From NCBI RefSeq assembly GCF_964204645.1, contig NC_134035.1, forward strand, positions 13,176,451 through 13,240,450: a stretch of 64,000 bases of DNA. The letters are read 5' to 3'. The stretch comes from Tubulanus polymorphus. Its lineage: Eukaryota; Animalia; Nemertea. Position numbers and translations under genes: made by a program. The notes beneath the pieces were generated by a model. That model was not told where the DNA came from, made no database searches, and was given only the letters and a program-made list of their open reading frames with translations. Of the stretch, positions 31,661 to 38,228 are shown one piece after another (the first letter of the stretch is position 1; each line of letters opens with the position of its first letter).

Positions 31661-34600
31661 CTATCTTCCGGCTTTGAACAATTTCTCGAATTCTTTCAGA
31701 TTGACGTTGCTGGAGATTGGTGGATTCGGGTATCCGGGTCCACGCAGTCGACTCGTTTTTATCATATATTCCATGCCTCCCATACCTCCGATATCAAAAC
31801 CTACAAAACGTACAGTAAATACATTTATAATTACAAGGGTGGTTCTATGAAAATTGGGAGGCCATGAGGTCCCAGATAAGGAAAGGTATTTTTCAGATTA
31901 AGCAGCCATGTCAGCGGGCAGTAGTTATTTCATTTCAAAGCTGAAAAATATTTCACATGAATAATTATGAAATAATATTGAAGGAACTGGAGGTTGACGA
32001 AAATGGGGTCCACATTCAAGGAAACCCGCTTCACTCCATTCTATGAGCCATTTGAAAACATTCAAAATGGCGCATAGAATTCTTCTTATCCTTCATAATT
32101 GCGGCTGTTTTCTTCAATTATGTCCCGATGATAATTAGTATATGTACACTTTACAGAGACTGTTGATTACGATGAGGGGGTGGTGGGGAGGGGGGAGGAA
32201 GGGGGGGGACACCTCGTCTTACTAATTAGACTGGCTTCATTTCCTCGATTAACCGGTGGCTAACGGATACACGTATTCACTAATCGACGGAAGAACGACC
32301 AGGTATATATAATAACATTATTACTGTCACGTTAGACAAAACACACTGTACATATCACACCAAGATAGAGGGAAGGGGAGAGAGAAAGAGGGAGGGGAGA
32401 GAGAAAGAGAGAGAGAGGGAGAGAGAGAGAGAGAGGGGGAGAGAGAGAGAGAGAGAGAGAGAGAGAGAGAGAGAGAGAGAGAGAGAGAGAGAGAGAGAGA
32501 GAGAGAGAGAGAGAGAGAGAGAGAGAGAGAGAGAGAGAGAGAGAGAGAGAGAGAGAGAGAGAGAGAGAGAGAGAGAGAGGAGAGAGAGAAAGAGAAAGAG
32601 AGAGAGAAAGAGAGAGAGAGAGAGAAAGAGGGAGGGGAGAGAGAAAGAGAGAGAGAGGGAGGGGAGAGAAAGAGAGGGAGGGGGAGAGAGGGAGGGGAGA
32701 GAGAGGGGGAGGGGAGAGAGAAAGAGAGAGAATGGCGAGAGAGAGAGGGGGATGGGTGGAGGGAGAGGGAGAGCGAAGGAGAAGGGGAGAGATGGCGAGA
32801 GAGAGAGAGAGAGAGAGAGATGGTGAGAGAGAGGGGGAGGGGCAGCGAAAGTACAGTACAGACCAAACATGAAAAGATAGATGTACCAGATATACGTATA
32901 TATGTTTTGTCATCATTTTAATGATTGTCTCGTCTCATTACAGTGTTTTACTGTTTACTGTCTGCTGATGAGTCTTATAGAAATGTGGTGTCTTTGTCTC
33001 AATAATCATATGTCATTTGTAGTTTGGCTTGCTGCAGTATTTTGTCATTAACACTGTCGTTAATTAAGTGTGAGTGTTGTCACTGCTGTGATAGTGCCTA
33101 CGATTTTATGTCGTTTGTTTTTGTGTTTTTGTCTCATTTCAGGAATTGTTGAAAAAGTCGTGTCTTGAACAAAGAGTTTTATCTATTCATCGACTGTAAA
33201 TGATTTGTTTTAAATCCATGTTTGAATTCTATTCGAATCCGATTAAATCGCCAGGACCCAGTTGTACACAGTCGTTACTTACAGAACCAAAATGAGCTTA
33301 GACTGGTCTTAAGTTGTTAGATCGGTTATAGAACCAAAATGAGCTTAGACTGGTCTTAAGTTGTTAGATCGGTTATAGAACCAAAATGAGCTTAGACTGG
33401 TCTTCAGTTGCTAGATTGGTTATAGAACCAAAATGAGCTTAGACTGGTCTTAAGTTGTTAGATCGGTTATAGAATCGAAATGAGCTTAGACTGGTCTTAA
33501 GTTGTTAGATTGGTTAAAGAACCAAAATGAGCTTAGACTGGTCTTCAGTTGCTAGATTCTGTTATAGAACCAAATTGAGCTTAGTGTGGTCTTTCTAGTT
33601 TTGACTGTGTTACTGGCTCCTGAAATCACACAGATCAGAATAAAACCATTCGATAAGATCGTTTCCACTGCTTAAAAATTAAATATAAAACGATAGAATT
33701 TTTTGAAATATATTTTTTGATATAATTTTGTTCTGCCAGTCCAACATATTGTGGGCATTTCTTACATTCATCGATTTGAAATTGACATATTCTACTGATT
33801 GGAGAGTTAAAAATGAAGTAGGTAAGAAATAGACTAACATTTCGTTAGACGTGATGATTGAAGTGGTCAGTGGTTACTGGTGGACTCAGATACGTTCTAC
33901 ACAGAACTACTTTACATTTCATTATCTTCTGTATATAACCTGGAGAAAATACCTAAATCCTTATGAATGTAACGTCTTTACAACTGATTTATACCAAAAG
34001 TTATCAATGATCAAGGTTTAAAAATTACGAGTCTAATTGACTGATAGATAATAATTTAATTTATACAGAATTCTTCGATACATTAAATCCACAATTTAAA
34101 GAGGGCGGTGGGGGGGGGGGGTCGTCCAGGGAGTTGCTTTTATAAAACTAAGTAACATATAGACGTCGAAATTTCCAGGGGGTTCGGGAAGGGGGAGGGG
34201 TTCTAATTAGAAATCCGGATTTTTCAGGTTTGATTTTGTTTTATAAACCCAGGCAATAAGTGACTGGCGCTTTTTTGGGATGCTGCATCATCTTCTGCCA
34301 CATCCTCTCAATCCGACTGCGTTCGGGATTATCTGCCAGCGTCTAACAGGTTTTTGAAGCTCTTTAGACGCATCTGACTGGTTAGCGGTAACTTCGGGTA
34401 GCGATTCGCGCGAAGTCGTTCAGAAATCAGAAAGTCCATATCTCCGATACCAAAACCTAGAAAAAAACATGAATTTCCATATTCTAACAAACTGATAACA
34501 CATTGCTGTAACTAATAGCGAACTGTTTACAGATTCAAACTGATTAGACAACTTTAAAAGAACTTTATTGTTTGCGAGTATTTATGAATGATCGCCTGAA

Positions 34601-37600: not shown

Positions 37601-38228
37601 TAATTACAATAGTTCAAGCAAATATAGCCGCAAAGCAGCGATAACGGATTTTCTGCCTTGTCAATCTAAATGCTGTACTAATATTTTGTTGAGATACAGT
37701 TATCTAGATACGAAGTCATTACACGCCAACCGAGAACTGTGGGACTTGGTCCAGAGGTCTCAGGTGTCACTCAAAATCTGTTATAACCGTCGAAATATCA
37801 TAGTAAACAATGAAGTGCACGAAGAGACTGAACTTCTGCGATGGGTAAAGTGTCGATGATATAAAGAGAGTATAAGATACTGTGTTGTACTTACTTACTC
37901 CACTTCGTTTGCTATTGTGATTTGCCCGTGATTTCGCTTGTATAAAACTTTTCAGTATACTGGCATACGAAGATGGCGACGACGGCCGACGATTGTGCAG
38001 ACGGCGTTCATCGTTACCACCGTCGTCATTCGAGTGATCTCTTTCCGTTAACGGTCGAACGCGACGATGGTGATCGTTGTTGTTTAAATAGTTAAAGTCC
38101 AAAACTAGATCGTCGTCGTCGGCTGGTTGGTGGCTGTACGAATGGCTGTTGACGGAAATAAGACATGTAGCGAATAGACTCACGGTGAACACAGTCTGTA
38201 TCAAGACACGAAACCAACCGCTACGCAT
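31661..38228 (-). CDS. Neuropeptide precursor, isoform B (157 aa); exons 38228-37895 + 31800-31661
   Basis: TTTTGTAG acceptor, phase 1; gives KR-SGVSFDIGGMGGMEYMIKTSRLRGPGYPNPPISSNVNLKEFEKLFKA-GR*; clearly paralogous to the exon at 34456-34329. Confidence 0.72.
32367..32842. repeat. (GA)n microsatellite / purine tract
   Basis: Directly visible. Confidence 0.97.
33255..33619. mobile_element. MITE family C with an internal 47-bp tandem array (~6-7 units)
   Basis: Ends GACCCAGTTGTACACAGTC / GACTGTGTTACTGGCTC enclose the same 47-mer as 17420-17972 (reverse orientation). Confidence 0.8.
34329..38228 (-). CDS. Neuropeptide precursor, isoform A (153 aa); exons 38228-37895 + 34456-34329; class B GPCR ligand-like amidated peptide
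   Basis: Hydrophobic signal peptide MRSGWFRVLIQTVFTVSLFATCLISVNS, acidic spacer with RR sites, then KR-SGVSFGIGDMDFLISERLRANRYPKLPLTSQMRLKSFKNLLDA-GR* (amidation signal); GTAAGT donor at 37894, TTTTTTTCTAG acceptor. Confidence 0.82.
34723..34764 (-). ncRNA. Minimal hammerhead ribozyme in a Penelope pLTR-like fragment
   Basis: ACAC-CUGACGA-U-GAUCUC(UAGGUU)GAGAUC-GAAAC-GUC-UUGU followed by AATAAATAAA; stem I is short with a mismatch next to the core. Confidence 0.7.
35949..35978. mobile_element. 30-bp palindromic mini-element
   Basis: CTTGGAGTAAT..ATTACTCCAAG; flanks GATACAC/GACACGC. Confidence 0.55.
36793..36985. repeat. 29-bp minisatellite (~6.5 copies)
   Basis: GTTTTTGATATCATTGTTTCAGTTTACAA. 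Confidence 0.95.
37019..37188. mobile_element. Longer copy of the CATCCTCCCCCGG-terminated element
   Basis: CATCCTACCCCGACAGGG ... GGTTCGAATCCCGGCCGGGGGAGAATG. Confidence 0.6.

Follow-up and report, generated by a model that had tools for sequence, protein, structure and literature searches.

In the vertebrate gene of calcitonin and alpha-CGRP (CALCA) one promoter and common 5' exons are combined, in a tissue-specific manner, with either a proximal exon carrying its own poly(A) site or the distal exon(s), and two amidated hormones are obtained. In the CRF-like diuretic hormone gene of the beetle Tribolium castaneum, DH37/DH47, the first coding exon is spliced to either of two duplicated downstream exons, each of which codes for a complete amidated peptide of approx. 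40 residues, and in Aethina a further duplication has led to three products (PMC6585902). Here we describe a gene of comparable design in the palaeonemertean ribbon worm Tubulanus polymorphus. The analysed stretch of DNA, referred to below as the window, comprises 64,000 nucleotides of contig NC_134035.1 and has the composition of eukaryotic DNA, with about 40% G+C and many microsatellites. The gene lies on the minus strand and was identified, by a protein search with its first exon, as RefSeq LOC141913111, "uncharacterized protein". We consider it fairly probable that LOC141913111 is a lineage-restricted gene for a secreted prepropeptide, in which exon 1 is spliced to one of two duplicated terminal exons, the proximal exon A or the distal exon B; judged from its sequence features, the product is probably a precursor of the neuropeptide type.

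The exon anatomy, read on the minus strand and numbered by positions of the window, is the following:

37895..38228, minus strand: coding portion of exon 1, the first coding exon common to all products; its translation is identical to residues 1-111 of the RefSeq isoforms X1, X2 and X3
37889..37898, minus strand: tandem 5' splice sites GTAAGTAAGT
34329..34456, minus strand: coding portion of the proximal terminal exon, A; the acceptor is in phase 1, and the rest of the Ser codon is followed by 41 codons to A-G-R and the stop
31661..31800, minus strand: coding portion of the distal terminal exon, B; the acceptor is in phase 1, and 45 codons lead to A-G-R and the stop

Exon 1 begins with the ATG at 38228 and contains an open frame of 111 codons ending in N-S-K-R-S-G-V. 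Its product starts with a hydrophobic, signal-like N-terminus (the 12-residue Kyte-Doolittle mean is 2.35 in the hydrophobic core, and residues 5-30 form a helix in the AlphaFold2 (AF2) model), continues with an acidic/basic spacer containing several RR sites, and closes with KR (residues 107-108), S-G-V and the first base of a split Ser codon. The acceptor of exon A is found directly after ...ttttttctag at 34456 and that of exon B after ...cgttttgtag at 31800. Both terminal exons begin with GTTTTG(G/A)TATCGGAG and both end with A-G-R-stop, the stop codons being located at 34331-34329 in exon A and at 31663-31661 in exon B. The encoded sequences start with S-F-G-I-G-D-M-D-F-L... in exon A and with S-F-D-I-G-G-M-G-G-M-E-Y-M... 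in exon B.

This structure is already present in RefSeq in the form of unnamed isoforms, and both junctions are represented among the models. Isoform X2 (P0002, 153 residues) consists of exon 1 and exon A, isoform X1 (P0003, 157 residues) of exon 1 and exon B. The exon 1 boundary carries two GTAAGT donors 4 nt apart (37889-37899). When the downstream GT is used, exon 1 ends at 37895 in phase 1 and is in a productive frame with both terminal exons; with the upstream GT it ends at 37899 in phase 0, which gives the frameshifted isoform X3 (P0001, 122 residues), where exon B is read out of frame and a stop follows after 14 residues. The C-terminal end of X3, SGVLISEVWEAWNI, is what exon B yields when it is read in the frame of the upstream donor. 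This isoform is without any amidated peptide and could represent either splicing noise or a regulated unproductive form. In the NCBI Gnomon procedure alternative isoforms are derived from transcript or RNA-seq alignments, and this holds especially for a frameshifted 4-nt donor variant that is joined to exon B. Since the presence of such a variant on exon B is hard to explain otherwise, X3 implies that reads joining exon 1 to exon B exist.

An earlier sequence-only reading of the window had proposed a shared exon ending in KR-SGV that is joined to two phase-1 exons with A-G-R-stop. Every coordinate and residue given there was found to be correct, base for base, upon reading and translating the minus strand; the two junctions agree with X2 and X1, and the peptides proposed are exactly residues 109-151 of P0002 (peptide A, 43 residues) and 109-155 of P0003 (peptide B, 47 residues), followed by the Gly that would serve as amidation donor. 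The assignment of exon B to the same gene is likewise supported by the model X1, and no first exon of its own could be located. The absence of a second signal-peptide exon between A and B, noted in the same reading, is in line with a simple open reading frame and hydrophobicity screen, in which neither an exon-1-like sequence nor an ATG open reading frame with a hydrophobic core was found in 31800-34320 or in intron 1. Its view of A and B as duplicated alternative terminal exons coding for paralogous peptides is also supported, by the RefSeq junction models together with the sequence identity and the codon-position signature described in the next section.

Paralogy of exons A and B and selection on both

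When the entire 268-Mb genome was searched in six frames with peptide A, only exon A itself (98%) and exon B were returned, the latter with 45% identity and E = 0.0024. Within the window, reciprocal tblastn searches with A and B gave E values of ~2e-8, and the products of the two exons, aligned globally, scored 11 standard deviations (SD) over the shuffled controls. The identity of A and B was 44-45% when the exons only were compared; BLASTP of the two tails gave 50% identity with E = 2e-15, and this identity is inflated because the six exon-1 residues S-K-R-S-G-V are common to both tails. Exons A and B are paralogues by all of these comparisons. Their identities at the first, second and third codon positions are 0.63, 0.80 and 0.37, respectively. 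The third positions, with 37% identity, are near saturation, and the duplication is an old one. Both exons have kept their length and acceptor phase as well as the start motif, the Y-P hinge, the L-K-x-F motif and the G-R-stop. The codon pattern and the retained features together are what purifying selection on both exons would give, and they point to such selection.

In the mechanism that we propose, exon 1 would supply the signal peptide, the spacer and the KR convertase site, and its phase-1 donor would be spliced to A or to B. The choice may be made by a competition in which the proximal exon A is either spliced in and polyadenylated or passed over in favour of exon B, comparable to calcitonin/CGRP and the beetle DH37/DH47; the use of exon B would need skipping of both the acceptor and the poly(A) site of A. 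Each isoform would then be cut after K107-R108 and amidated via the C-terminal Gly of the G-R-stop. The products are predicted to be free of Cys and to begin with a conserved S-F-x-I-G, which is followed by a short helix; the hinge Y-P-x-x-P would connect this part with a second, amphipathic helix at the C-terminus that ends in L-K-x-F-x-x-L-x-x-A-amide, the predicted C-termini being L-L-D-A-amide in A and L-F-K-A-amide in B. In the AF2 model, which is of low confidence (pLDDT 49), helices were placed at residues 115-127 and 139-152 with a proline-rich stretch between them.

The lengths of 43 and 47 residues are maximum values for the predicted peptides. They have to be taken as upper bounds because R-A-N-R, a minimal R-x-x-R site directly before Y-P in peptide A, could be cleaved as well, and cleavage at this site would free a C-terminal amide of 22 residues instead of the whole peptide. 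In nemertean precursors, cleavage has been reported at some monobasic sites that have another basic residue within a few positions (Thiel et al. 2021, PMC8557429).

The hallmarks of a prohormone can be recognised in this precursor of 153-157 residues: a hydrophobic N-terminus, KR directly before the conserved block, Gly followed by a basic residue and the stop, and no Cys. The generic features of a neuropeptide precursor, i.e. a signal-like N-terminus, the convertase site KR, an amidation signal and a small, Cys-poor precursor, are all present. The most likely role of peptides A and B would be that of neuropeptides or peptide hormones acting through a receptor.

A further segment of exon 1 shows a weak resemblance to the C-terminal half of peptide A:

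37944..38009, minus strand: candidate for a third, degenerate peptide module within exon 1 (precursor residues 74-95)

It has the pattern E-R..N-R.P..P......L-K-S-F in common with peptide A. Its local alignment with A scored 36 (shuffle mean 20.1, SD 3.7), a score that was reached by 0.4% of the shuffles in case of A and by 23% in case of B. Within the window tblastn gave E = 0.44 for this segment, and BLASTP with composition adjustment gave no match. The segment is suggestive only, an in-register hint that the precursor may have grown by repeated duplication of one module.

Family searches and rival explanations

A word search of the protein database with exon 1 returned the three RefSeq isoforms only, and phmmer of P0002 against 1.84 billion representatives gave the self cluster and one spurious match of 1629 residues. 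Region-restricted word searches with the A tail and the B tail found nothing beyond the gene itself, and the exact look-up of P0003 on contigs had nothing on record. P0002, P0003 and their peptide parts did not match the Pfam profiles of CRF, PTH, TIP39, calcitonin and the secretin family (Hormone_2) at E <= 10, and phmmer against all PDB chains of at least 20 residues, among which are numerous receptor-bound structures of vertebrate peptide hormones, returned no peptide hormone at E <= 10. The six-frame genome search with the CRF profile PF00473 gave no match; as the canonical DH44/ELH gene of this genome was missed too, the CRF profile does not recognise the nemertean members. When either tail was compared with that DH44/ELH precursor by BLASTP, no alignment to the mature-peptide region was obtained. 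Look-alikes in the protein atlas were all below 0.9 (Hormone_3 0.83, Hormone_2 0.82) and can be taken as leads only.

The sequence motifs of the known families were compared as well. The iPTH peptides are characterised by an S-D near the N-terminus, which is highly conserved, and by a Pro at position -4, which is only mildly so (Xie et al. 2020, PMC7224569). There is no S-D dipeptide in A or B, and position -4 is Leu in both. Neither peptide has the disulphide ring of calcitonin/CGRP or the G-x-x-x-P-amide end of DH31; they contain no Cys and their predicted C-terminus is Ala-amide. Both would be Cys-free amidated peptides within the range of ~36-47 residues after a dibasic site, a feature that is generic and not diagnostic. 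Judged by these comparisons, peptides A and B match no detectable known hormone family, and the PTH/iPTH-like or CRH/DH44/ELH-like affinity put forward in the sequence-only reading, for which a profile search had been suggested, is not supported. The 'DMF peptide' family was checked in Thiel et al. 2021 and is unrelated. A likeness seen by eye to TIP39, to the N-terminus of NPY (Y-P-x-x-P) and to the secretin family was reproduced by no tool and was dropped.

The same results bear on the possibility that A and B are highly diverged members of the known class-B-receptor ligands (CRH/DH44/ELH or PTH/iPTH/QSGamide). Their size of 43-47 residues, the amidation, the lack of Cys and the helical propensity fit class B ligands in general (the helices being those of the AF2 model), the start S-F-G-I-G-D-M-D-F-L loosely recalls, by eye, the nemertean DH44/ELH start S-L-S-I-V-G-S-L-D-A-L, and the sole exact architectural precedent is a CRF-like gene. 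Nemerteans possess iPTH-type, PDF-like (unc4) and L-DCc class B receptors, several class B receptors of the phylum are without known ligand, and the QSGamide/iPTH ligand was seen in none of 13 nemertean transcriptomes. However, the Pfam and PDB searches, the comparison with the DH44/ELH precursor of the genome itself, the iPTH hallmarks and the atlas scores all speak against such an origin, and the proline-rich hinge in the middle of the peptide would be unusual for helices of the CRH/PTH type. A diverged membership of these families seems quite unlikely to us. It is very improbable that A and B are the missing ligands of a nemertean class B receptor, in which case the choice of the last exon would switch between two agonists of different preference or potency.

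We also regard it as unlikely that the gene codes for secreted defence peptides (antimicrobial, mucus or toxin) whose alternative exons diversify the effector. Nemerteans do secrete many peptide toxins (PMC6410017, PMC9415933), the gene is restricted to its lineage as far as can be seen, a frequent trait of defence peptides, and the products are predicted to be amidated and Cys-free, with a net charge of about +2 to +3 and, in the AF2 model, an amphipathic C-terminal helix. This charge is modest, however, and neuropeptides classically have this layout, in which one copy of a long peptide comes immediately behind KR and closes with a strict Gly-Arg-stop; the strong conservation of the second codon positions between the old duplicates suggests a constrained receptor-binding shape and not diversifying selection. 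A decidedly doubtful alternative is that only exon A is functional, exon B being a relic duplicate used in rare splicing noise, and X1 and X3 over-reading a few reads. Three observations could be read in this sense. X3 shows a sloppy use of the donor with this exon, no canonical AATAAA or ATTAAA hexamer is present within ~1 kb after exon B, and exon B is unconfirmed in RNA reads: a read check in three sequencing runs of unknown kind, which covered only the stretch 31280-32370, gave four short contigs, none of them on exon B, and even the run with 87% of the locus words showed nothing there, at a coverage too thin to indicate silence. The last two of these, together with the following points, also weigh against the reading of LOC141913111 as a two-isoform neuropeptide-type gene. 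The RefSeq XP_ records are computed models, not experiments. No orthologue or homologue was found in the searches made (two billion-scale protein searches), and the 7-8-mer and 5-mer motifs of the gene were absent, by exact-word look-up, from the accessible portion of the proneuropeptide list of Thiel et al. 2021. The transcriptome of that study differs in sequence from the genome, so exact-word look-ups could miss an orthologue. In favour of a functional exon B stand its intact frame, equal in extent to that of A, and the preservation of the start motif, the acceptor phase, L-K-x-F, the hinge at Y-P and the G-R-stop; third positions with 37% and second positions with 80% identity are not expected for a decaying relic.

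Introns, repeats and flanks of the exons

The following further elements were recorded around the coding exons:

34457..37894, minus strand: intron between exon 1 and exon A, with a 29-bp tandem repeat inside (36782-36981)
31801..34328, minus strand: region from the stop of exon A to the acceptor of exon B, containing tandem repeats of 47 bp (33279-33593) and, at 32378-32833, a long (GA)n/(CT)n microsatellite
34055..34060, minus strand: ATTAAA hexamer, a candidate poly(A) signal by its motif only, 266 nt after the exon A stop

The array in intron 1 contains 6.9 copies of the 29-bp unit (98% matches), the one between A and B 6.7 copies of the 47-bp unit, and the (GA)n tract there is ~455 bp long. 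Downstream of exon B a 20-bp unit is repeated 13 times (31005-31271). In a stretch of intron 1 at 37020-37200 (minus strand) the sequence ..ggccgggattcgaacc.. is reminiscent of a tRNA in its 3' part and could belong to a tRNA-derived short interspersed nuclear element. In the region 31000-39000 no tRNA was called by ARAGORN and no Rfam element was called.

On the 5' side, a splice-acceptor-like site (..tttcttattttcag/atacc) was seen in the interval 38262-38700 (minus strand), ~40 nt upstream of the ATG; before it comes a low-complexity tract of ~300 nt that is rich in polypyrimidine (38381-38688). LOC141913111 probably has an upstream non-coding 5' exon. In the surroundings of exon B one of the sequencing runs of unknown kind (a run also labelled X3) gave a contig of 151 nt at 31367-31517, i.e. 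150-300 nt downstream of the exon B stop. The same run gave a contig of 318 nt, only 90 nt of which match the locus, just upstream of exon B (31845-31934); the remainder is unlike the locus and is probably a dispersed repeat.

Comparison with known systems

A canonical DH44/ELH precursor has been listed for T. polymorphus (Thiel et al. 2021, PMC8557429). In the genome it is encoded by an uninterrupted open reading frame of 145 residues (L003:1183-1620, plus strand, corresponding to about 5981000-5981437 of G000:C8). Like the product of LOC141913111, this precursor is small and has, behind a dibasic site, a single long amidated peptide that lacks Cys, and the start S-x-x-I-x-G-x-[LM]-D-x-L is loosely similar by eye only. 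In contrast to the gene described here, it is a separate gene on another contig, with a single open reading frame, no BLASTP similarity, an L-M-R-L-amide end and no proline hinge. The genomic DH44/ELH sequence reads ..D-A-L-A-D-M-I-S-A-Q-E-A-K-K-L.., where the transcriptome of Thiel et al. 2021 has ..D-A-L-T-D-M-L-S-A-Q-Q-A-R-K-F... Several residues differ, thus the specimens used for the genome and for the transcriptome may belong to different lineages of a species complex.

The insect iPTH and spiralian PXXXamide-QSGamide precursors (PMC7224569) have a comparable layout, consisting of a signal peptide, KR, and one mature amidated peptide followed by Gly and a basic residue. Their conserved S-D and Pro at -4 set them apart from A and B, with which they have no detectable similarity. 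The gene would add an orphan candidate neuropeptide to the nemertean repertoire, in which several class B receptors are still without ligands. Its practical yield would be two synthetic amides, or four if internal cleavage takes place, as candidates for orphan receptors.

In case of CALCA, only the architecture of alternative terminal exons is alike. There is no sequence relationship, the nemertean peptides are without the N-terminal disulphide and without Pro-amide or Phe-amide, and the distal choice in CALCA involves two exons. The DH37/DH47 gene of Tribolium is the exact architectural precedent, since in both genes a shared first coding exon, coding for the signal peptide and part of the precursor, is combined with alternative duplicated peptide exons. 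The beetle peptides, however, are recognisable members of the CRF/DH44 family, whereas the nemertean ones match no family; the alternative beetle exon holds the whole peptide together with its convertase sites, whereas here KR and the first three residues are located in the shared exon. As the beetle and nemertean lineages are only distantly related, the arrangement arose independently in the two. If both isoforms are made, LOC141913111 would represent an independent spiralian case of a peptide-exon duplication that lets one promoter deliver two related hormones. The architecture itself is not new; new are the lineage, a nemertean, and a peptide pair without recognisable relatives. Placed beside calcitonin/CGRP of the vertebrates and DH37/DH47 of the beetles, the nemertean gene would be a further example of a recurring trick and not of a new principle.

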